From: Lepidodermella squamata | Taxonomy: Eukaryota; Animalia; Gastrotricha | Length of the DNA: 64,000 bases | Direction: 5' to 3' | Assembly (NCBI GenBank): GCA_047495785.1 | Contig: JBLDXI010000028.1 | Coordinates: 1,736,001-1,800,000 of the forward strand | Part shown: in pieces, positions 1,496 through 41,346 of the stretch | Numbering within the stretch: position 1 is the first letter of the stretch | Layout of the letters: every line of letters starts with the position of its first letter | Notes under the pieces: model-generated | Databases searched by the model: none | The model's input: only the letters and a program-made list of their open reading frames with translations | What the model was told of the DNA's origin: nothing | Position numbers and translations under genes: made by a program

Positions 1496-3311
1496 ATATT
1501 TTTCAGACCCACTCAATGGGTGCAACGAGCCCGAACTCACGATCGCCTTTTTCTACTTTTCTACAAAAACGCACAAAAAGCCACAAAAAATCGACAAAAA
1601 TCTGAAAAACAAAAATAATATAACATAAAACTGCAAAATATGAACTGCCTATGATCATGCTCAATTTATCACTGTTACGAGCCCTAAATAGCATGGGGGC
1701 AATATATGTTTCACGTTATATATGTTAACCATATGTGCCTATAGCGCCGGCCGGCGGAGGGCCTACATAAATAAAACTACGACATGCTATCAGATAGATC
1801 TCTTCAAGAGGAACACGATGACATTTTTTACTTAATTTTAAAAATAAAGGAACTGTGAAAAATGAGGAAATATGTTTTTTTTGCATTCGGAAACAACCCA
1901 TGAAAACAGCTTCAAAAAAGTTAAATTGAGCGACTTTTTGAGTAAAATCGAGTCTTCATACCAAGAGCTACGCTTTGATACTTGGAGCGATCTTGGTTAA
2001 TTTTTTCCTGATTTTCTGGGAATTTCGAAAATCTTTGGCGAATGGTATTGCATTGATTTTTGAGATTGACACTCCGCTGAATTATTTCCAACTGCGCCAT
2101 GTGGTTCCATCACACGTGCTCACACAAAAGGTTCAGGATTGAATCCTCAGTAATTTTGCATTGTTTTTTCTGGGCTGAATTCTCTAAAATTCCCAGAAAA
2201 TCAGTAAAAAGGCCCTACTACAATCTTTTTCCAGCTACGCCATGTGGGTGTGGCGCACGTGCTGTCAACAAAGATTCCAACTGGAAACCTCCAGTTTTGA
2301 AATAGCTGGAGGTTGAGATTTTTTTCCAAAATTCCTGGAAAATCAGTAAAAAATCATCGAAGGTCGCTCCAATTATTGAAATGTGGACCACGATGTGGGA
2401 TACCTGGACCACCAAAAAACTGCTTCAATTTCAATTTAAATGATCATGAAATATATTTTTATTTATAACTGCGAAACCGTTTTTTGTTTATAAAACCAGT
2501 GAAATTCCTTCAAAAATTTCGAAAAAATAACCAACGTGTTCCTCGTGATTTCCTCTGTCTGGATCCATCAACCAAACCCTTGGGAAAATCGAAACCGTCA
2601 CGGAACCAGTAAAAACAGAATCGAATATTTTGTTTACTTTTCCTCCAAGCGCTGATGAATCAGCTGACCATCTGGCGCCCATGGCGTAGAACCCTTTTTC
2701 TCGTGAATAAGCAGTCTATCCTAAATTAGGTATGACTATGATTTTAGGCCTCCAAGAAATTGATGAATCAACAGGACATCTGGCGCCCATGACATTACAC
2801 CCCAGTTCGAGGCCACAAAGAAAAGATCCTCGACTTTCAATTACCGTACTGCCCGAAATTAATGTCAGCCTCAAATAAATGTCAGGGTAGGGGTATTTCA
2901 ATTTTAGGACCCTCTTTTCTGAACGTTTCTCCGTGAGCCGGTAAACTTCGGTCGCTGGGTCGAGCATTCGAAAGTAATAAATGTCATGGTTTTTAATTCG
3001 GGCAGTACGGTAACAGGATCGCACGCATTGTTTTGACGTGGGCCCTTTCGAGTTTAATGGCAGTCATAGCTTCAAAGCAGCAATTACAAAATAAAGCAGT
3101 ACTTGAACATGATAAAATTCTTCTTCTGATTTATTACTAAACGTGAAATGTTTCCGAAAAGCTGCCTTTGTTATTTTTTGATAGCTCTATTGATTTTCCT
3201 GACGTTGGTAAAAAATTGAATGCAAAATGTTAACCACTTTGAAATGAATTTGTACTAACCATAAACGCAAAACTGTATTTCTGGTTTAAAAAAAATAGTT
3301 CAATCAACAAA

Positions 3312-3448
3312 CATTTCAACGTCTAAATAAGGATCCCTTTCGTCACTATAATCACTATAATTATAGGGCCATGGATTGCATTAAACTTGTCCCAGCAAAA
3401 CAACGCTTCTCATCATTTTCCGGAGGAGTAGCCCAGTAACCCATCAGG
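3312..3448 (-). pseudogene. 3'-end fragment of a lipase paralogue
   Basis: Matches 5033-5157, including a shared tcattttccggaggagtagcccagtaacccatcagg (LMGYWATPPEN), and truncates abruptly at 3448. Confidence 0.85.
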
Positions 3449-3852: not shown

Positions 3853-4705
3853 ATGCTCTATTTGACTCTGATTCTGTTGATTGTACTTGCCCATGCGTCG
3901 GCAGCTATTTCTAGTCAGCCTTCACCCAACTGTACCACGCCTGATTATGAATTAAGTTGCGAGCAAACCGGTACAGCTTGGCGTTACAATCCGAGTCTCG
4001 GCTACTGCGAGAAGCAGCCGGTGAGTTGACTCCAGTATCTTACCATTTCTGATTATTTTGAGGATGACTTATCTACAGACCTGCGAGCAGACCAGTCAGA
4101 ACGCATTCAAGACAGAAGCAATGTGTCTTAAAGAATGCCGGCCTATACCTGACAAATGCAAAGTCTGGTTCGTGGAATTTTGTGCGGTTAGCTTGCCTAG
4201 TTATGCCTGGACTTTGGAACCGTCTTCATACTCCTGCAAATACAATGCGGTAAGTGTCAAACCTCGAGGACTATAGGGGATAACAATTAATCATTTTCAG
4301 AATTCTGGGCGTAGAAGTTATCATTTCGATACACAGAGTGATTGTGAAAAGACTTGCTTACCGCGAAAACCAGACAATGATGGCGCCGATAATGAGACTA
4401 GCGTGCAAGAATCGAATGAGGACAATGATCGACCACGGGAGTGCTTTCTTCCACTCAAACAAGGCACTTGTCTAAAGAAGCTCACGGTCGATCGTTCAGT
4501 CCCTAAGAGCTACTACTACGACAAAGAGTGGCGAGAATGCTTTTCTTTTCCCTATTTAGTATGGCTTCCTTAAATTGAAATTCCATCGTAAATGTTTAAC
4601 CTTTAGGGTAATTTGCCTGGTTGCAAAGGTGGGAACGAAAACCGATTTTCAACTAAGAAACAGTGTGAAAAAGTTTGCGTGAAAGATGATGATCTTGATG
4701 ACTGA
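3853..4705 (+). CDS. Secreted three-domain Kunitz/BPTI-like protein 1 (231 aa)
   Basis: Exons 3853-4020, 4079-4249, 4301-4558, 4607-4705 with phase-0 GT-AG introns. Signal peptide MLYLTLILLIVLAHASA; C-terminal GCKGGNENRFSTKKQCEKVC; AATAAA at 4742. Confidence 0.9.
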
Positions 4706-5015
4706 TAGCCGCTCGAGGCCCGTTTGACAATTTGATGTCACAATAAAATTCATCGGCATTCGTTTCGCCAAAACGTAAAATATGTGGATACAGATGACAG
4801 TTTAATCATAGCTTTCTAACAGGAATCGCATATTAGAGCATAGCACCATTGACAACTTCTTCTACGACAATTTTACTAAGCGTGAAAACATAGATAAAAA
4901 CCTGCCAGTTCCTTTACCTCTTTTTATAGCTCGTTGTGCGATTTTCCTGAAATCAATAAAATAGAATTTGCGTTACCGCAGAACTTTATTTCTAATTTAA
5001 AACAATAACAATAAT

Positions 5016-6579
5016 TTAATCAGCAAAAATCTTGTCCACGTCTAAATAAGGCTCTCCTTCATCACTGTAATTATAAGGCCAGGGGTTGCATTTACTTGTC
5101 CCAACAAAACAGCGCTTCTCCTCATTTTCCGGAGGAGTAGCCCAGTAACCCATCAGGAAACGGTTTCGCCAATTGCTGCAGAATTCATAAGTGCAATTAG
5201 CTTCAAGCTGCCGTTGAAAGAACGCTTCATGCTGGGTCGAAAGTACCGATAAACAAGAGCAGTACTCCATGCGACATGACGGCACGATGCTTGAAGTGAA
5301 AACGTCGATAGCCAGATAATGCGAGCAAGTGTTTGCGTTGAATTCGTTCACCTTGTTCGAAGTGTGGCGGGATAAACCACCCAACGCGATTTCGCCAACA
5401 GTTTTATCGCCGGAGAAGCCATTCGGCGAACCAGTTAGATAGCTGACAACGTCATCGTTATGCGCCCAATCGATGCCTTTTATGAAGGTTGACAGAAAGT
5501 GCTTCCAGCCATCGATTTCTTTACCGAGTTGTAACTTCGGCTGTTGAGGTATCTGCCTTCGTTTCCGTTTCAGCCGGATCTTCCCGTCGAATGGTTGAGG
5601 CTCCACATTGCAATCGGGCTGCGGTCTGGTTGGGTCATTCACGTAAAAGTCGACATGACCAATAGCTCGAAGAACACCTAGTATCGAAGTATGGACAACG
5701 TCGACAAATTCGGCATCAGCCTTGTCCAATCTCTCAGGACCATAGTGAGTGTCGAAAGCTGGGCCGGCAGGATCGAGTCCAGTTATCCGTCCCAAGCGGC
5801 CAGTTTTCAATGACTTTCCGACAAAACCGCAGACGTGCGCTGGAAAATACATCAAAGTAATCTAAGAAACGAATTGGACCTTGCTTACCTCCAAGGCTGA
5901 AACCAATGCAATGGACTGTAGCTAGATCGATGTGGGGTTCTGATTCCAGAAAACCGGCAACAACGGAACCGACAAATTTGACATTCTGAGCAGGAACAGC
6001 GTAAAGTTTGTCCAGCTTCCAAAACCGGAGCCAATCGCCGCCGTATGGCGACGCGCTGCTCGACCAATCGACCAACATCAGATCAGAATCAGGCTGAGAA
6101 GTCCTGCTGTTTGATTTATCGAGATTCAGAAAGTTTAGGCTTACGGTTATAAATCGCAGAGCGGAAATAAGGTTTCGATGAGGAGCTTGCTTCCAAGTTG
6201 CTGCCGAGCCGGAAAATCCGTGAATAAGAATGATAAGCTTCCATGGGTTGAGTTGCGTACTATGCCACATCATTCATGGAATAAGGATAGAGACATTTTC
6301 GGAGAATTACCTGCTTCTTATGGGTTCCAAGTTGAATCTTTGCTTGTTCCATCTGAAAAACTTCACACTCTCAGCAACATCTCTGGGTATAGGAAGCTGG
6401 GGTCGAGGAGCTGTTTCATTTCTTGTGGGTGATTCGGTCTTCTCATCTGGCGAACAGTAAGTAGTAGCTGTCTGACCTGTTGGATCGCTGTCATCTCGAT
6501 AAGTGACACATTCTGGGGAAACGCTCAGAACGGAAAACGATAGTGTGAAAATTATGACGAAAGGTAATTTTATTTTCAT
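5016..6579 (-). CDS. Secreted pancreatic-lipase / phospholipase A1 family protein (~470 aa)
   Basis: Exons 6579-6311, 6259-6145, 6093-5889, 5839-5016. Signal peptide, IIHGF-type oxyanion motif (ILIHGF), VDW, GFSLGAH (catalytic Ser), RITGLDPAGP (Asp), DAEFVDVVHT, GHVDFYVN and CSH (His). No C-terminal PLAT domain apparent. Confidence 0.92.
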
Positions 6580-6883: not shown

Positions 6884-8428
6884 ATGACTTTTGTGACCTT
6901 GGATCGTTTCCGAATCACAATAGCCCCGCTAGCTTTAAGCTGTTCACTTGCCATCTATGTACTCATCTTTCAGAACATAGGGTTGAACAGTCCGTTATTC
7001 TCGTCTATAACCCAAAAAGCATGGTCTGAAAGTAACTTTTTCGAAGAGCAATGCAGAGCATTACTGAGAGAACCCGGTGACTGCGCTTCGCTGATTAAAG
7101 CCAACGTTTCTCGCGGCAAATGGATTGACCCGACGGGCGCAAACTTCTCGAGAACTCATTTGGATCTCAGTCGTGTTGTCCTTGTCATCTACTTCAACGA
7201 TCCTCTATACGTTACAGCGGCAAAAAACTACGCACTCTACCGAAGGTAAGATTCTCAATAGAAATGTCGAGTAGATAGTCATTCCAGATTTTTACAGGAT
7301 ATTCGGTGAAATTATGTTCTGCGGCCCTGAAGACAGCGAAAAGACAAACTTCTGGCCTTTATGGCAAGTGGTGCGCGAAAAAATGCCACAATTATCCCTA
7401 CCGGAGCGTGTCAAATTCTTAACTTATCCCAAACCTAAATGGGACAACGGCGAATCGGCTTACCTCTGCTTCAACCAAGCGCTGGACACGATTTGGCAGG
7501 CTGATTTCGATGGCATATTGGTCGCAGCTGATGACGTTCTGCTGAATTATTGGCAGTGGGGCGGGCCAAATGATGTGAAAAGAAGCCTGGATAAAAACTG
7601 GTTTATGATGATGCAGTACCCTGGTTTGCGGCCAAGAGATGTCACAAGGTACTTTGTCATCCATCAAGTTGATTCGGTGAGTAAAATTCATAGCATCTCA
7701 TCTTCTCCAATCTATGAAAATAAAAGGGAGGGGGTTGTGTTGGCCTGAACTCGAATAATTCCGTCGATTGCGAGAAATCATCAAACTGGGTGTATACTAC
7801 CCGGTACAAAGAAGAGCTGACATCCTTTTACAACGAATTCGATTCGCTAGCCAATTCCAGCTCGGAATTCTGGCAGCGGGCTCATCAAAACCTTCTGAAT
7901 GCAACGTACGGTCCGAGACGTGTGATGTTCAGCGGCGGCGACTTTTTCTACATTACGAAATCGCAATGGTACTCTTTTGCTGAAATCTTCAATTTGATGG
8001 CAAAGTAACAAATCGCTATTCCCTATTTTGAATGTAGTTTGATTTTATTTTGGATTTTCAGACACAAGGTATGGCTCGAACTCGCAGTTGGATCCTCTGT
8101 TTGCGCTCTTCTCCAGCCCGATGATGTCCAATTGCTGAGCTTGGCCGGGCAAGACTGGTCTAATGGTCCGATTCGAGTGAATCCTATAGGCGCACTCTAC
8201 GACATGACACTGCCTTACATGCATCCAATCAAACTGAGCTCGGTTTTCCAAGAAAAATTGGCGTATCCAAAGGAGCTGATGGGTATTATCGCCAATAAGT
8301 CTGCAATAAAAGTACACAGCAGCAATACTGGCCGCTACCTTAAGAATGACACAACCAAAAACTGCGTCTTTTGTCATGTTCTCAGCATCTCATTGAAAGA
8401 CTTGCTTGAAAACAAAGAGATTCACTGA
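6884..8428 (+). CDS. Type II membrane protein, STELLO/DUF288 C-terminal-like putative glycosyltransferase A (461 aa)
   Basis: Exons 6884-7245, 7298-7676, 7727-8004, 8062-8428. N-terminal TM anchor; VLVIYFN..LY...IMFCGP, G..AYLC, GILVAADDVLLNYW, GDFFYI, VWLELAV and HPIK motifs as recalled for STELLO/DUF288 C-terminal halves. Confidence 0.8.
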
Positions 8429-8600
8429 AAATAAAAAGCAATCATCTACAAAATGAGACAAAATGATTTTGCGTTTAACGTGTAACATGGGTGATGACCT
8501 CAATAAACTACAAATCGCTTATTTCATTTCATTCATGAAATAGGCACACGACGTGTTAGTCGAAACGTATGCTTTTCACCGTATTTTTTTTATTTTCCTA

Positions 8601-10095
8601 ATGGTTTCATTACCAATCAAACGATCGTGTAGAGTCCTGCTTTTAATATCTTGTAGCCTTTTCACGGTTTACCTTTTCGTCTCGCCCTACAACTCGAATC
8701 TGGTAACAAATCAGGAAGCACGACGCAGCAATTATTTCGAGGATAAATGCCGCGACCTGTTACAAAACTCGCCTGAATGCTCGGCCCTTGTTGACGACAA
8801 CGTCTCGAAAGGAAAATGGTTCGCACGACAGAACGAAAACCTCACTAGCCATTTACAGCTGAGTCGAGTTTTGCTTGTCATATATTTCAACGACCCACTC
8901 TACATTACAGCAGCCAAAAATTACGCGCTCTATCGAGGGTAAATTGTCTTGATATCGGTTAATTACCAAGAGGAACCTTTGATTATTCTAGAATTTTCGG
9001 TGGTATCATGTTTTGCGGCCCTGAGTCTGGAGATGAATCGAATTTCTGGCCACTCTGGAGAATTATTCGAAAGAGAATACCGGAACTCTCCCTGCCTGAA
9101 GAGTTCAAATTTGTGACATACCCGAAGCCAAAATGGGACAACGGTGAACTAGCATACATTTGCTTCAATCAAGCTCTCAATGCAATATGGCAAGCTAATT
9201 TTGACGGGATATTAGTAGCAGCTGATGACGTTATGCTCAACTACTGGAACTGGGGCGGGCCTGCTGATCTGAGATCTGTGGATAAAAACTGGTTCATGAT
9301 GAGTCATTACCCAGGTCAGCGTCCTCGCGAAGTAACACAGGCTGTAGTGATTCACCAAGTTGACACGGTAAACCATGGTGTACATAACCATGTTGGTGAA
9401 AAAATTATCTGATTTAGGGCGGTGGATGTCTCGGGTTGAGCTCGAATAATTCAGTTGATTGCGGAAACTCTTCGAGCTGGTTCTATACTTCAGTGTACAA
9501 GGATGCGCTTGTATCGTTTTTCGACGAATTTGATTCGTTAGCTGTGTCTGGCTCTCAATTCTGGCAGACGGCGCATCAAAACGCTGCTGATTGTACATTC
9601 GGTCCTCGGCGAATTCTGCATAGCGGAGGGGATTTTTTCTACATAGCTAAATCACAATGGTCATATTTTTCTGAAGTCTTCACATTGATGGCCAAGTAAG
9701 GTTTTATATAGCTTTTATCACTTTTATATCACTATCTGATCAGGCATGGGGTATGGCTGGAATTTGCAGTTGGAACGTCTGTTTGCGCCTTACTACGCCA
9801 AGAAGATGTCCAACTACTGAGCTTGGCCGGGCAAGACTGGTCGCATGGTGGCATTCGAACGAAACCAATTGGCGAGGTCTACGACATGTCACTGCCTTAT
9901 GTACACCCTGTCAAGCTAAGCTCAGTATTTGCTTCTGGGCTGACGCCTCCGAACGACCTGGCTGATGCCATCGCCAAAAAATCAGCCGTGAAATTGATCA
10001 GCACAAACACTGGTCGCTATCTTCAGAACGATACAACTAAGGACTGCGTTTATTGTTATGTCTTGAACATTGCGTCTCATTGGCGGCTTGATTAG
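8601..10095 (+). CDS. STELLO/DUF288 C-terminal-like putative glycosyltransferase B (447 aa), tandem paralogue
   Basis: Exons 8601-8938, 8992-9367, 9418-9695, 9744-10095. Intron positions and motifs are the same as in paralogue A. Confidence 0.8.
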
Positions 10096-36400: not shown

Positions 36401-38350
36401 TTGGAGCAGAACTTCAAATGCTGACTCCTGATGAAACCATGGCTGCTGAGTCAACAAGTAAATGCGAAGTTTCTTCACCTCAATTCTAGTTGTTTCTCTA
36501 CCATTGTCCAAATTCATCGTCAATGGCGTAAACCGTTTGAACCAACCAGCCTCGCCTAACACCAATCTTTATCTGCACCCGATACCAAAAATCATATTCA
36601 AAGAGATTAAGATGCTGATTTTTAACATGTTTCCCAACAATATCACCCAAATCAAGTATAAGCGCCTCACTGCTGAACTAGCAACTGCTAAAACTGGGCG
36701 AAAATGTCACCGCCTTCAGGTCGATGATTCATGGCCGCCGTGTACAAGAGTTGATCAAACTGACAGTCGCGTCATTTGTCATTTCCGACTGTATTGTTTT
36801 ACGTACGAGATGACATTCACCAATGCGATTGGCCCTTTCGCTGCTGTTTTTTTTTATTTACCGAGTATTTTCAGCTATAATCAAAGATCAAGGCAAAAGT
36901 CGGAATTAAATCAAGCAAATTCCTTGACGAAGAAAAGCACTCTGGAAACTTTACGACACTACGAAGATTGAAAACTTGGCTTCGAGCAAAAATGGGGAAT
37001 TCCCATTTCCGATCTAATAATGAATCCATGGTTCCAACTACGAGCGCTCAGTGGCTCAGTTCCGTCGGAGACCTCTTTACGGCTAAGCGTGGTCATAAGA
37101 CCAGAAAAACCCACCAAGGTACCACGGTTTATCTGTTATTCAGATTGCGAAATTTGATTCATAAAGTTGTTTCACTGCCCAATTGATGGTGGTCTTCCAG
37201 CCAGAAGGCCACCGCTATCACCGGCCTACTGCTGCTAGTGTAACGATGTGCCGGGTGGCAGCTGGCATCTTCGCAATGACTAAGAACAATATTGTGATTC
37301 TCATGTGACAGCTAATTAGGAAGTGATCGCGTGTTCGACTTGTATCGCTAATATTTAAGGCCTTGAAATCCAATGATCAATGTTCGATTCATTCACAATA
37401 AAGTATAGAGTAGTGCCTGGCCAAGTCTTGATGTTTCCCTGACAGCTAGTCGCGATTGTTTCGTTCTCAGCTCACTGGCAGGAGCCATGTTGTGGTTGCG
37501 AAGGTCCTAGGTCCTAGAAAGAACTGTTTCAGCAAAAGTGTGAGCTTGTGCGTCGTGAATTGATAAAATGAGAGAGGCCAAAATCATTGTTTCAACCCGA
37601 TCTTTGACCGATTTTCAAAAAGTCGATTTTAGGACCCACTCTTATCTCTGCCGAGGGCATTCAAACTCCAACAGTACCGTTAATTAGTTAATACGTTAAT
37701 ACGGTGAATTTCATCGAATAACCCACTCGAATAAATGCCAGGCCTACAGGTTGAAGCCAGATATGATTATCAATAGCATTTCTCACTGCGAAATCAGATT
37801 GAATAAGGTTTGGGTTTGGGTTAGGTTTAGGTAATTCAACCTGACCAGCCTTTCGATTATCACGTGATTTAATGATGATGAGCTTAGATCTGGTCATCTT
37901 TGTTTTTAATTGAGCCTTAATGTTCCAAGACATACTATGGCCTCTGTGAGAAAATCCAACAAAAACCTGAGGTCCGTCATGAAATTAGTCGCCGACGTTG
38001 GTTTAGCTGCCAGAAAGAAAAGGCGGTTCAAACCCTACGCTATGTAAACAAGTCTTCACCTCAAAACTCTACAGGCTACGAAGTACGAAGGTATCGTTGA
38101 ACAAGCTCTGAAAGCAGCAGTAGAGTCCAATAATTACCGTGAATTTTTTGCACACTTCTTCAACCTGATAATGCGTTGATCGTTGAAACATACACACATT
38201 GTCTCATTTAATTATTATGTGACACATAAAAGGTGGCTATTCAAGCCGACTGTTCATATCATCAGCCTAATGTCTGAACTCATATCTCTGTTTCAATCTG
38301 TTTATTAGCAATTAGCTATTAGCAATACCCAACTGTTTAGTGAATAGGAA

Positions 38351-38530
38351 ACTTACCAGAGTTAGATTTGATTGCAACTACATTGCCGAGTTCAGCCTTC
38401 GAAACCTTTCGGCAGGGTCCAATAACCATTTTTTACACGCATTCTTCATGTTTCTGAGACGAGCCATCGCTCAGTCGCCTGAAGCAGTTCAATCAGGTAA
38501 TGAATGTGGCGAATTTCACCGACCTGCCGG
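38351..38530 (-). pseudogene. TPR-helical family fragment (LRNMKNACKKWLLDP / AELGNVVAI exon end)
   Basis: Homologous to the 60151-60260 exon end with the same phase-1 GTAAGT donor; also close to 48734-48870 at nucleotide level. Confidence 0.7.
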
Positions 38531-38689
38531 ACATCAACCTCAAGATATAATCGATTTCATGGTTCACACTAACAAAATGAGCGGCTCGCCTTCATTTTTG
38601 ACAAAGGTTATTCGCAGGCTGGGCTGTTTAGCGCTTGCTTCAGTGGTTTTCTTATCACCAGCCGGACCTGGCCAGAAGAGGTTCCGAGT

Positions 38690-41346
38690 CATGGTCGCTC
38701 ACCCCGATGATCCCGCGCTCGCCGCTGCTGCTACAGCTGCTACAGCTGATTTCGAAGTTGCCCGCGCTGCCTCTAACGCTGCTCGCGATGCCCTGGGCAT
38801 TGCAATCGACGCCGCTATTCGCTACAGGCGAACCCGCGACCAAGAGTTGGCAGACAAACGTCGACTTGCTGCATCAATCCTGGTTCGACTTGTAGGGCCT
38901 GCCTATTATTACATCACCAGGGCGGCTGGTGACGACCCCAGGGCGATATGGTCAGCGCTCAAGGCGCATTTCGAGAGGACCTCGGCTGCCACTGAGTCGA
39001 GGCTCCTGGCTCGGTTTCACAGTTTCGCTATGGCTCCAGGAGCCACCCTCGCAGCTCGCAGCGCACTTTCGGGACTTCGCCCAGTTGCTCCAGGCGCTGG
39101 AAAACGCAGGAGTATCTATCGAGGAGCGGATGAAGCGGGCCGCTCTGTTCCATTCGCTGCCGCCGAGTCTGGGAAACATGAGAACAATGCTTCAACATCG
39201 AATCCCGCCGCCATCGGTCGCCGAAATCCAGCAGGCGCTGCTAGCCGAGGACGACCGGCTCAACGCTGCTCGCCCCGCGTCCGCCCCCCCGGGTCAAGCC
39301 CGGCACGAGGCCGCAGCCCTGATGATCGCTCAAAACCTCGATCGACGCGACCGTCGCCCCGCAGCTGGGATCGGAAGAGCTCGAGGCTACCCGCGTCAGC
39401 AACCAGCCCGCCAACAGCCAAGACAACCTGGTCGTCAAGAAAATCGGCCTCCGTCGGCTCAAGGCGGCGCCCGAAACGACCCGCCATGCCCTCTCCCTCG
39501 GCACCAAAACCACACCGCTTCGCAATGCAATAAGGCCAAGGCCGACAGCCGGTCAAAATGCTACGATTGTGGTCAGTATGGGCATCGTCAGCGCGACTGT
39601 CCCACACCAGTCGCCGGTGGTCAAGGCGAGGAACGCGTGCTCCAGGCACGTACCGCTCGCGTTTCCGCTCAAGGCGGCTCCAGGTATCATGATATCCCCG
39701 AGCAGCGAGAACGCGAGCTCCTTCAAGAGGATCGCTACTCAAACTCGTCCGCCGAAGAGGAAGAAGGCGAGGAGATGGAAGATGGTGAAGTCGAAAAGTC
39801 TCTATGACTGCCGAGTAGTTCCCGTCAAGGTAAACAAACTTATAATCGGTTCTCGCGTTCAAGACTGAAACATAAATTTTATGACTCCAGGTCCGCTCTA
39901 GGCGCCAATCTAGCCACTCAAGGTGCGAACGTCAGCTTTAATCCTTCTAACGACTCTATGTCGGATACCGATTCCGAAAGTGCGGTAAATGCCACCTTCG
40001 GTCAACTCAAGTGTCACACCTGTATCTGAACTCACAGTTGAATCAAATCGATAACTTGATCGACTTGAATAACAGATGGTGTCGAATTTATTGATAATGC
40101 GGTTTTATTGGCAAACTTCAGAACAATATAACGGGTAGAAATCTTAGGAAGCTTTCTTCGACTATTTGCAGTAAGGACTCTAGTATCATTTACTACAGCG
40201 ATAAAAACTGATCTCTTAAATGCAGAAAATCAGTGGTTTATATATCTTCCGGGTTACAGTACTTTATATAGCCAAATGCGTCATTGGATTAATGCCAAGT
40301 CTCATTTTCGCAGTTGGATTGTTGCCAGGGTACATTTATTATGTGGATGAATCATCATTTCTGTTGCGTAGTGTGATGCGCAGTTATCGTTGTACTTGAC
40401 TGATTCGTCGGCAACTTTCATACACTGACTGATTGATCCTCCGGCACTGTTGTGCGGCTCTTTGATGTTTATGCCAACTGCGTAGCGCAGGTATGCAGAA
40501 ACCTAAACTGCGTGTTTGAGGTGATAATGCTCTCAACTGGTTACTCGTATTTTAATTGAGAATAAACAGTGATACCCGCATTGGTGTTGAGTCTTTAACG
40601 GGTTTACACAAGGTTCGACCCGAGTTCCCGGCCACCGCACGGAAAAATAATAGTTTTACTCAAGGTATTTTGAATGCGTACTCAGGCATGACACCCAGAA
40701 AATTATATTCTTTACTCGCTAGCAAGGCTCAATCTAATAAGTGGGTTCTAGACTCCGGCGCCAGCTCGCACATGTGCAACAATCCTCGTCTCTTCAGGAA
40801 CCCGACTTGTCGAGCAAACCAACGTCTACCTGGGGGACGGGCGTCGTATTCCAGTCAACTGGTTCGGCGCGGTGCAAATTCAAGCAGCAGCATCGGATTC
40901 GTCTGCATTCTGGGTGGAACTCGAAGACGTCATGTACGTACCAGGCCTGGCCTCAAATTTATTTAGCGTACCAGCAGTCACGGAAAAAGATAATGTAGCT
41001 ATTTTTACAAAAACTCACGCTCAAATTCGATATTTGAATTTCTCAAATAAAGAAGTGTTAATTGCTGACAAACTTGACGGACTTAATTTTTTGCGACAGA
41101 AATCACATCACGCACTACTCGCACCCACGTACACTCAATGACATCGAAGATTCGGCCATGTCGGATCGCCAGCATTGAAACAAATCCTTCGACATAACCT
41201 GGTTGATGGTCTTAAGGTCAGCGGTCGCCACATTCTCGAGGATTGTGAACCCTGCGCTCTAGGCAAGGCTCATAGAGCAACACATTCCAGCGTCAGTTAT
41301 CAACGATCAAAATGCGAGTTGGATCTAGTCCATATGGATGTTTGTG
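38690..41346 (+). mobile_element. Degenerate Ty1/copia retrotransposon (gag, protease, start of integrase) with an unrelated ~550-bp insert at ~40021-40576
   Basis: DDPRAIWSALKAHFE (copia gag), CYDCGQYGHRQRDC knuckle, WVLDSGASSHMC protease and HRRFGHV..CEPCALGK..LDLVHMDVC. Frameshifted and truncated at ~41346. Confidence 0.92.

Follow-up and report, generated by a model that had tools for sequence, protein, structure and literature searches.

A lipase gene of the gastrotrich Lepidodermella squamata with a 94-residue lid and a furin-type motif inside it

Introduction

The lid of pancreatic-type lipases opens at the lipid interface and sets both the activation of the enzyme and its substrate choice. 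Proteolysis is also known in this family. Cleavage of LPL at residues 296-299 separates the domains and inactivates the enzyme. In horse PLRP2 (1W52), the nick is reportedly located in the lid and the chains are said to stay together, so that a nicked enzyme that remains stable would have a precedent there; pancreatic proteases are said to make this nick, and the lid is of normal length and has no dedicated convertase motif. According to the passage of PMC8287333 that cites Mancheno et al. 2004, horse PLRP2 was crystallised in a proteolysed form (1W52). In LPL and endothelial lipase, convertases use R-x-K/R-R sites to regulate activity, and these sites are outside the lid; the furin site of LPL (residues 296-299) comes after the lid (217-238), towards the PLAT hinge (PMC8319833). 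In the full-text literature, convertase cleavage was found only for LPL, endothelial lipase and ANGPTL proteins and never within a lipase lid, and no paper was found that describes a convertase site inside a lipase lid.

Two loops are used to sort the members of the family. Triglyceride lipases have a beta9 loop of more than 15 residues, and PLA1-type enzymes have one of about 13 residues or fewer; the short lids of the PLA1 type have about 7-12 residues, and the longest lids, of 45-49 residues, belong to wasp venom lipases (PMC7240578).

In this study, we analysed a window of 64,000 nucleotides of L. squamata (positions 1,736,001 to 1,800,000 of contig JBLDXI010000028.1) and describe a lipase gene within it. 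Like the members of PF00151 that consist of the catalytic domain only (invertebrate neutral lipases, vespid venom PLA1, PDB 4QNN), the encoded protein has GxSxG, the triad and no PLAT. It shares with them a lid that is bounded by a Cys pair and placed just before the catalytic His, and probably secretion as well; its short beta9 loop is as in PLA1-type members. Its lid has 94 residues, whereas that of pancreatic lipase has about 23 and those of PLA1-type enzymes have 4-12. Unlike the catalytic-domain-only members, it has a polybasic convertase-type motif in the lid, and about 60 further residues, including two Cys, extend its N-terminus. LPL and endothelial lipase belong to the same enzyme family and have R-x-K/R-R as well, and cleavage of the site in the window is predicted; the motif of the window protein lies inside the lid, between the lid cysteines of a protein with no PLAT, whereas the LPL site lies outside the lid.

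Results

Gene structure and a homologous gene

The lipase gene is located on the minus strand and is intact (Table 1). Translation of 5016-5837 on the minus strand gave one continuous piece of 273 residues, hereafter the exon-4 piece.

Table 1. Features of the lipase gene, in positions of the window
Feature	Position	Strand	Evidence
Lipase gene, four exons, intact	6579-5016	minus	ORFs, sequence, homologue comparison, sparse RNA
Exon 1: ATG and Cys-containing N-terminal extension	6311-6579	minus	ORF, sequence
Intron 1, 51 nt, GTAATT..CATAG	6260-6310	minus	required for joining the reading frames; L001 intron between the matching parts
Exon 2, encodes ..LIILIHGFSGSAATW..RFIT	6145-6259	minus	translation, alignment with L001
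Probable intron 2, 51 nt, in frame, stop-free, GTAAGC..TTCTCAG	6094-6144	minus	comparison with L001
Exon 3, ends in nucleophile elbow G-F-S-L-G (Ser codon 5898-5896)	5889-6093	minus	translation
Intron 3, 49 nt, GTAAGC..TTTTCCAG	5840-5888	minus	spliced junction in run X1; L001 intron at the matching position
Exon 4 with stop codon	5016-5839	minus	PF00151, PDB matches, 51-sequence alignment
Lid: two Cys codons (5612-5610, 5327-5325) around 94 codons	5325-5612	minus	translation
Basic run R-L-K-R-K-R-R, then Q-I-P-Q-Q-P	5556-5576	minus	sequence
Candidate in-frame 48-nt GT..AG, judged coding	5477-5524	minus	RNA read pieces and comparison with L001
Amphipathic segment GWKHFLSTFIKGIDW	5466-5510	minus	hydrophobic moment; helix in AF2 model at low confidence

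A word-indexed protein search with the exon-4 piece, limited by its length window, gave matches only to the first 28% of the query, and a search with the lid and the C-terminal part only, limited in the same way, found nothing. No full-length orthologue turned up when 1.84 billion representatives were searched exhaustively with HMMER; the two-stretch matches were mostly fused tandem lipase models from arthropods. When JGI metagenome contigs were scanned with the alignment, 11 lipase loci were found, 0 of which matched past residue 88. Only a fragment of 91 residues (P0143) matched the C-terminal part in the HMMER search, and it led to the contigs L001-L003, which are ENA metagenome assembly contigs near-identical to one another. 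They represent the only independent close homologue that was found.

The gene on L001-L003 has a matching exon structure, and its product shares 48% identity with the window lipase over exon 4. No synteny was found between the window and L001. The identities in the catalytic core, the first 20-27 lid residues, the remaining 67 lid residues (104-170 of the exon-4 piece) and the post-lid part were 67%, 20%, 36% and 68%, respectively; the alignment had 2 gaps in the core, 7 in the first part of the lid and 2 after the lid, and the 67 residues aligned without a gap. The lid of L001 has 87 residues. Exon 1 of the lipase gene was 31% identical in alignment to L001 1807-2049, and its hydrophobic N-terminus MKIKLPFVIIFTLSFSVLSVS was signal-peptide-like when judged by eye.

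Intron 3 splits the nucleophile elbow (G-F-S-L-G/A). The position and the phase of intron 2 are those of an L001 intron (RFIT/PDSDLMLVDW in the window and SNVA/PQSAILFVDW in L001). We took 6144-6094 as an intron because L001 has one at the matching site and phase and because its removal restores the family spacing before VDW; the stretch, over which no RNA read was found, is probably a true intron. A coding reading of 6144-6094, which would give a protein of 487 residues, was dropped, as L001 has an intron exactly there. After removal of the stretch, the predicted lipase has about 470 residues. This probable intron sits within an open reading frame, and an ORF-based reading would probably miss it. 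Short in-frame stop-free introns can hide in ORFs of this genome, which matters for gene prediction.

Family, catalytic residues and enzyme class

The exon-4 piece matched Pfam PF00151 with 82.9 bits (cutoff 27; E 3.6e-23), and the match covered residues 1-78 only, up to the first lid Cys. The exon 3 piece alone gave a weak match (16.9 bits). In PDB, the sequence matches of the exon-4 piece were LPL, hornet PLA1, PLRP2 and PL. In exon 4, the catalytic Asp (5774-5772) is followed by the beta9 loop (5693-5655) and the lid; the catalytic His (5321-5319) comes next, and the C-terminal part is rich in Cys. The triad is made up of the G-F-S-L-G-A elbow over the exon 3/4 junction, the Asp in ITGLDPAGP and the His in C-S-H, and its columns are invariant; in the exon-4 piece, D22, C76, C171 and H173 are invariant columns of the 51-sequence alignment. 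By analogy with the family, the lid pair C76 and C171 presumably forms a disulfide. The PF00151 match, the intact Ser-Asp-His triad and the PDB relatives bear out the assignment as a lipase that had been made in a preliminary description of this DNA.

No PLAT domain was found: PF01477 gave no match, and the protein continues for only about 100 residues beyond the catalytic His. The beta9 loop HTSILGVLRAIGH has 13 residues (His to His, by the counting of PMC7240578) and falls in the PLA1-like short class. Despite this short loop, the gene is not to be classed with the standard PLA1 enzymes, because the lid has 94 residues; the lid is longer than that of any class in PMC7240578, so the usual loop rules cannot predict the substrate preference. 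The lipase core was most like rotifer (Seison, Brachionus) and insect sequences. Judged from its sequence, the product is a secreted-type lipase or phospholipase of the pancreatic-lipase family that consists of the catalytic domain only.

The 94-residue lid

The first lid Cys is preceded by QPD, and the second directly precedes SH. Translation gave C-94 residues-C at coordinates identical to those from which 94 in-frame codons between the lid cysteines had been described before. Among the 184 lipase modules retrieved, lids typically had 4-34 residues and only four others had more than 40; among the retrieved relatives the lid length spanned 4 to 81 residues. The lid in the window is about four times the normal length.

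The comparison with L001 shows that the lid has two parts, a variable and probably flexible linker of 20-27 residues and a conserved module of about 67 residues, for which the model predicts three helices, the first of them amphipathic. The amphipathic segment that had been noted in the lid was recovered as GWKHFLSTFIKGIDW, over which the helical hydrophobic moment peaks at 0.58-0.59, and its counterpart in L001, GFKNIFSHFVYGVDF, is conserved. This amphipathic helix may be just the usual lid helix. The lid alone gave no match to Pfam at E up to 1, and a feature-based comparison with the ESM Atlas gave only lipase fragments at 0.80, which was not significant.

RNA reads and the candidate 48-nt intron

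The preliminary description had pointed to an in-frame 48-nt GT..AG within the lid (5524-5477) and had warned that it might be spliced out. The stretch is present and has 48 nt. The caveat was reasonable, because another in-frame stretch of the gene, the 51 nt at 6144-6094, appears to be truly intronic.

In run X1 (labelled 'RNA?'), a contig runs past 5841 into CCAAGGCTGAA, which is the reverse complement of the exon 3 end. This contig joins exon 4 to the end of exon 3 and thus contains a spliced junction, which indicates that X1 holds lipase mRNA. One X1 read piece is located at 5477-5522, wholly within the candidate intron, with its mate at 5579-5635. A second X1 piece, deduced from bin depth arithmetic and not a listed record, lies at about 5514-5570, across the candidate donor. 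No skip joint over 5524-5477 was reported in X1, where the depth was only 3-10. As far as these sparse reads show, the lid is retained in the RNA. L001 codes straight through the region and lacks a GT..AG there; of 16 residues, 7 agree between the two proteins (KEIDGWKHFLSTFIKG and KQWDGFKNIFSHFVYG), a share above the lid average.

A real intron at 5524-5477, possibly an alternative one, would leave a mature lid of about 78 residues without the amphipathic helix. By its letters alone the candidate could be read either way. In length and in AT content (0.60) it is closer to the true introns (49-51 nt, 0.61-0.65) than to exon 4, which has an AT content of 0.51; its donor GTAAAG is acceptable, and the probable intron 2, in frame and stop-free, suggests that such a stretch can be an intron in this very gene. 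The acceptor ATAAAAG is weak, and the X1 pieces inside the candidate and over the donor, together with the homologue that codes through it, speak against splicing. An intron would not stay conserved as protein at such a distance, and for this reason and because of the RNA reads, we believe that the 94-residue lid is the best model. The stretch is most likely not spliced, and a mature lid that lacks it is very improbable; because the RNA coverage is thin, a minor spliced isoform or alternative splicing of 5524-5477 may nevertheless occur.

The polybasic motif

The furin-type motif that had been reported in the lid is present, with RLKRKRR directly before QIPQQP. The basic run contains the overlapping motifs R-L-K-R, K-R-K-R and R-K-R-R, and R-x-[KR]-R occurs nowhere else in the protein. 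In 262 fetched lipase-family proteins, R-x-[KR]-R occurred at 2.7e-4 per residue, from which about 0.025 would be expected in a lid of 94 residues. The linker of L001 is Asn-rich and unrelated in sequence, yet it ends in N-R-Q-K-R at the aligned place. The Gln with which the segment after the cut had been proposed to start is not conserved, as the homologue has Ser or Tyr there.

Among the 184 lipase modules, R-x-[KR]-R within the lid was found, besides the window and its homologue, only in P0152 and P0253, two lipases from metagenome contigs, both of which have long lids. Both resemble the window lipase in the expanded lid with a convertase-type motif and differ from it in that their lids are shorter (60 and 81 residues, respectively) and not alignable, and the motif of P0253 comes late in the lid. 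The 60-residue lid of P0152 starts with VSRRRRQ, which BLAST aligns to RKRRQ of the window, and P0152 shares the elbow IGFSLGA.VCGF with the window lipase. P0152 and L002 come from one metagenome sample, so P0152 is probably a paralogue in the organism of L002. P0253 (L016 3001-4245) comes from a different sample, is intronless and has 414 residues; its lid is acidic and Ser/Thr-rich before RRRKR, and RRRKR is followed directly by EWFALKLWNKGKKKIKNMIKAI, a strongly cationic amphipathic helix. Judged from its sequence, P0253 is the clearest example of a cleavage-type site followed by an amphipathic peptide. The lipase P0181 of the rotifer Seison nebaliae has a lid of 43 residues with FKRR, which is dibasic only, as P4 is not Arg.

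All four long lids (those of the window lipase, its homologue, P0152 and P0253) have Arg at P1 and at P4 and either Lys or Arg at P2, in a small sample of four sequences from perhaps three organisms. Such a recurrence is unlikely to be due to chance, and a generic basic patch would account for the pattern less well than a convertase site.

Structure prediction

AlphaFold was run on the exon-4 piece alone with an alignment of 51 rows. The mean pLDDT of the model was 59, and that of the lid was below 50 (about 40). The amphipathic segment (residues 105-118) was predicted, with low confidence, to be helical, as were residues 127-135 and 147-156. Residues 85-104, the stretch with the basic run, flanked by Pro, Gln and Asn, were coil with pLDDT below 50, a low confidence that is compatible with disorder and is not proof of it.

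The full-length model of P0152 was used as a proxy and had a pLDDT of 84, above 90 in the core and below 50 (about 40) in the lid. It matched pancreatic lipase, PLRP2, LPL and hornet PLA1 (1LPA, 1HPL, 4QNN; E down to 8e-26), and through these models the pancreatic-lipase fold is confirmed for the clade. Structure prediction, which had been proposed as a check on the lid, thus gave the family fold through the P0152 proxy, while the lid geometry was unusable. With the lid pLDDT below 50, the models neither support nor refute the lid mechanism.

Surroundings of the lipase gene

Several features around the lipase gene were recorded. At 3303-3447 on the minus strand, 1.6 kb downstream of the lipase, there is a fragment with about 90% protein identity to the last ~45 lipase codons, a similar 3' flank and a frame break, which looks like a partial duplicate or a pseudogene remnant. 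The X2 assembly graph branches at this lipase-duplicate region, with a loose end at 5157. The plus strand has, at 3853-4600, a small gene of several exons that encodes a secreted protein rich in Cys; one of its ORFs has a sub-threshold Kunitz/BPTI match (19.5 bits; cutoff 21). X1 contigs with loose ends at 4309-4436 suggest that this gene is expressed and spliced. At 4653-4764, one X2 contig has 126 other letters in place of 110 bases, and it carries several substitutions at 4797-4812; this suggests an intergenic allelic or haplotype variant.

Just upstream of the lipase, two ORFs on the plus strand (6884-7249 and 8553-8942) share long near-identical stretches (..SRVLLVIYFNDPLY.TAAKNYALYR) and are followed by more similar ORFs. 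They look like tandem paralogues of one gene family. A Cys-loop channel ORF also neighbours the lipase in the window, and a search with this ORF gave no match. Farther away, an ORF at 38340-39533 on the plus strand matches copia-type gag (PF14223, E 1e-6) and is probably a remnant of an LTR retrotransposon.

Discussion

In this study, we consider a long two-part lid with a convertase cut as a maturation or activation step, after which the chains would remain joined by a disulfide, to be the best explanation of the locus, and we give it about an even chance. We infer that the lid is cut, that two chains result and in which direction this would alter the activity. A furin-like convertase in the secretory pathway would cut after the basic run. 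Convertases act in the secretory route, and the hydrophobic N-terminus is consistent with the protein entering it. The two halves would be held together by the disulfide at the base of the lid and by their common alpha/beta-hydrolase core, in which the strand and the His after the lid would be part of one fold with the first half. The lid module, with its N-terminal end freed, would swing off the active site more easily, and cleavage would be a maturation or activation step. Convertase cleavage of LPL and endothelial lipase inactivates these enzymes and does not activate them, which counts against the activation reading. The convertase reading is further weakened by the fact that a single independent close homologue was found, by P0152 being probably a paralogue in that organism and by the missing P4 Arg in the lid of Seison nebaliae.

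We also considered that the lid might be an internal pro-segment. The enzyme would then be a latent lipase plugged by the 67-residue module, and the convertase cut would turn it into an active, disulfide-linked two-chain enzyme by a zymogen-type switch that would have been used repeatedly in the lineage. A switch of this type has not been described for the pancreatic-lipase family. We regard this reading as possible but rather doubtful. A haemolytic or membrane-binding activity of the lid peptide is a speculation.

It seems unlikely to us that the basic run is a binding patch by which the enzyme holds on to anionic surfaces (glycosaminoglycans, mucus and acidic phospholipid membranes, for example) and that the long lid stays uncut and serves as a cap for interfacial binding. 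Basic clusters in the pancreatic-lipase family also bind heparin, to which the basic region around the furin site of LPL contributes as well, and this counts against reading the run as a cleavage site. In the window the K/R-rich cluster adjoins an amphipathic helix, and P0253 has a highly cationic helix after its motif. The furin site of LPL, too, lies within a basic region (PMC8319833). A binding patch needs no Arg at exactly P1 and P4, yet the sequences of all four long lids fit R-x-K/R-R. In the homologue, moreover, the basic stretch would make a poor polycationic patch, because it is only a short NRQKR in an Asn-rich linker. The two roles are compatible with each other.

It is quite improbable, in our opinion, that the lid is only a tolerated, fast-evolving loop with an incidental motif, in an enzyme that otherwise works like any invertebrate neutral lipase or PLA1. 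In favour of such a loop, the lid contains no recognisable domain and was modelled with low confidence, and lid length is highly variable in the family: the retrieved relatives span 4 to 81 residues, and wasp venom lipases have lids of 45-49 residues (PMC7240578). Against it, 67 lid residues align free of gaps at 36% identity, in a pair of proteins with 48% identity over exon 4, and the motif is present in four long lids and missing from about 180 ordinary ones.

A long lid at whose base a convertase motif is conserved points to proteolysis as a second layer of control on the lipase. So far, the lipase family is known to offer only one form of such control, the convertase cleavage of LPL and endothelial lipase at sites outside the lid. 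If the reading is true, the gene would encode a natural protease-switched lipase, which would be of interest for enzyme regulation and engineering.
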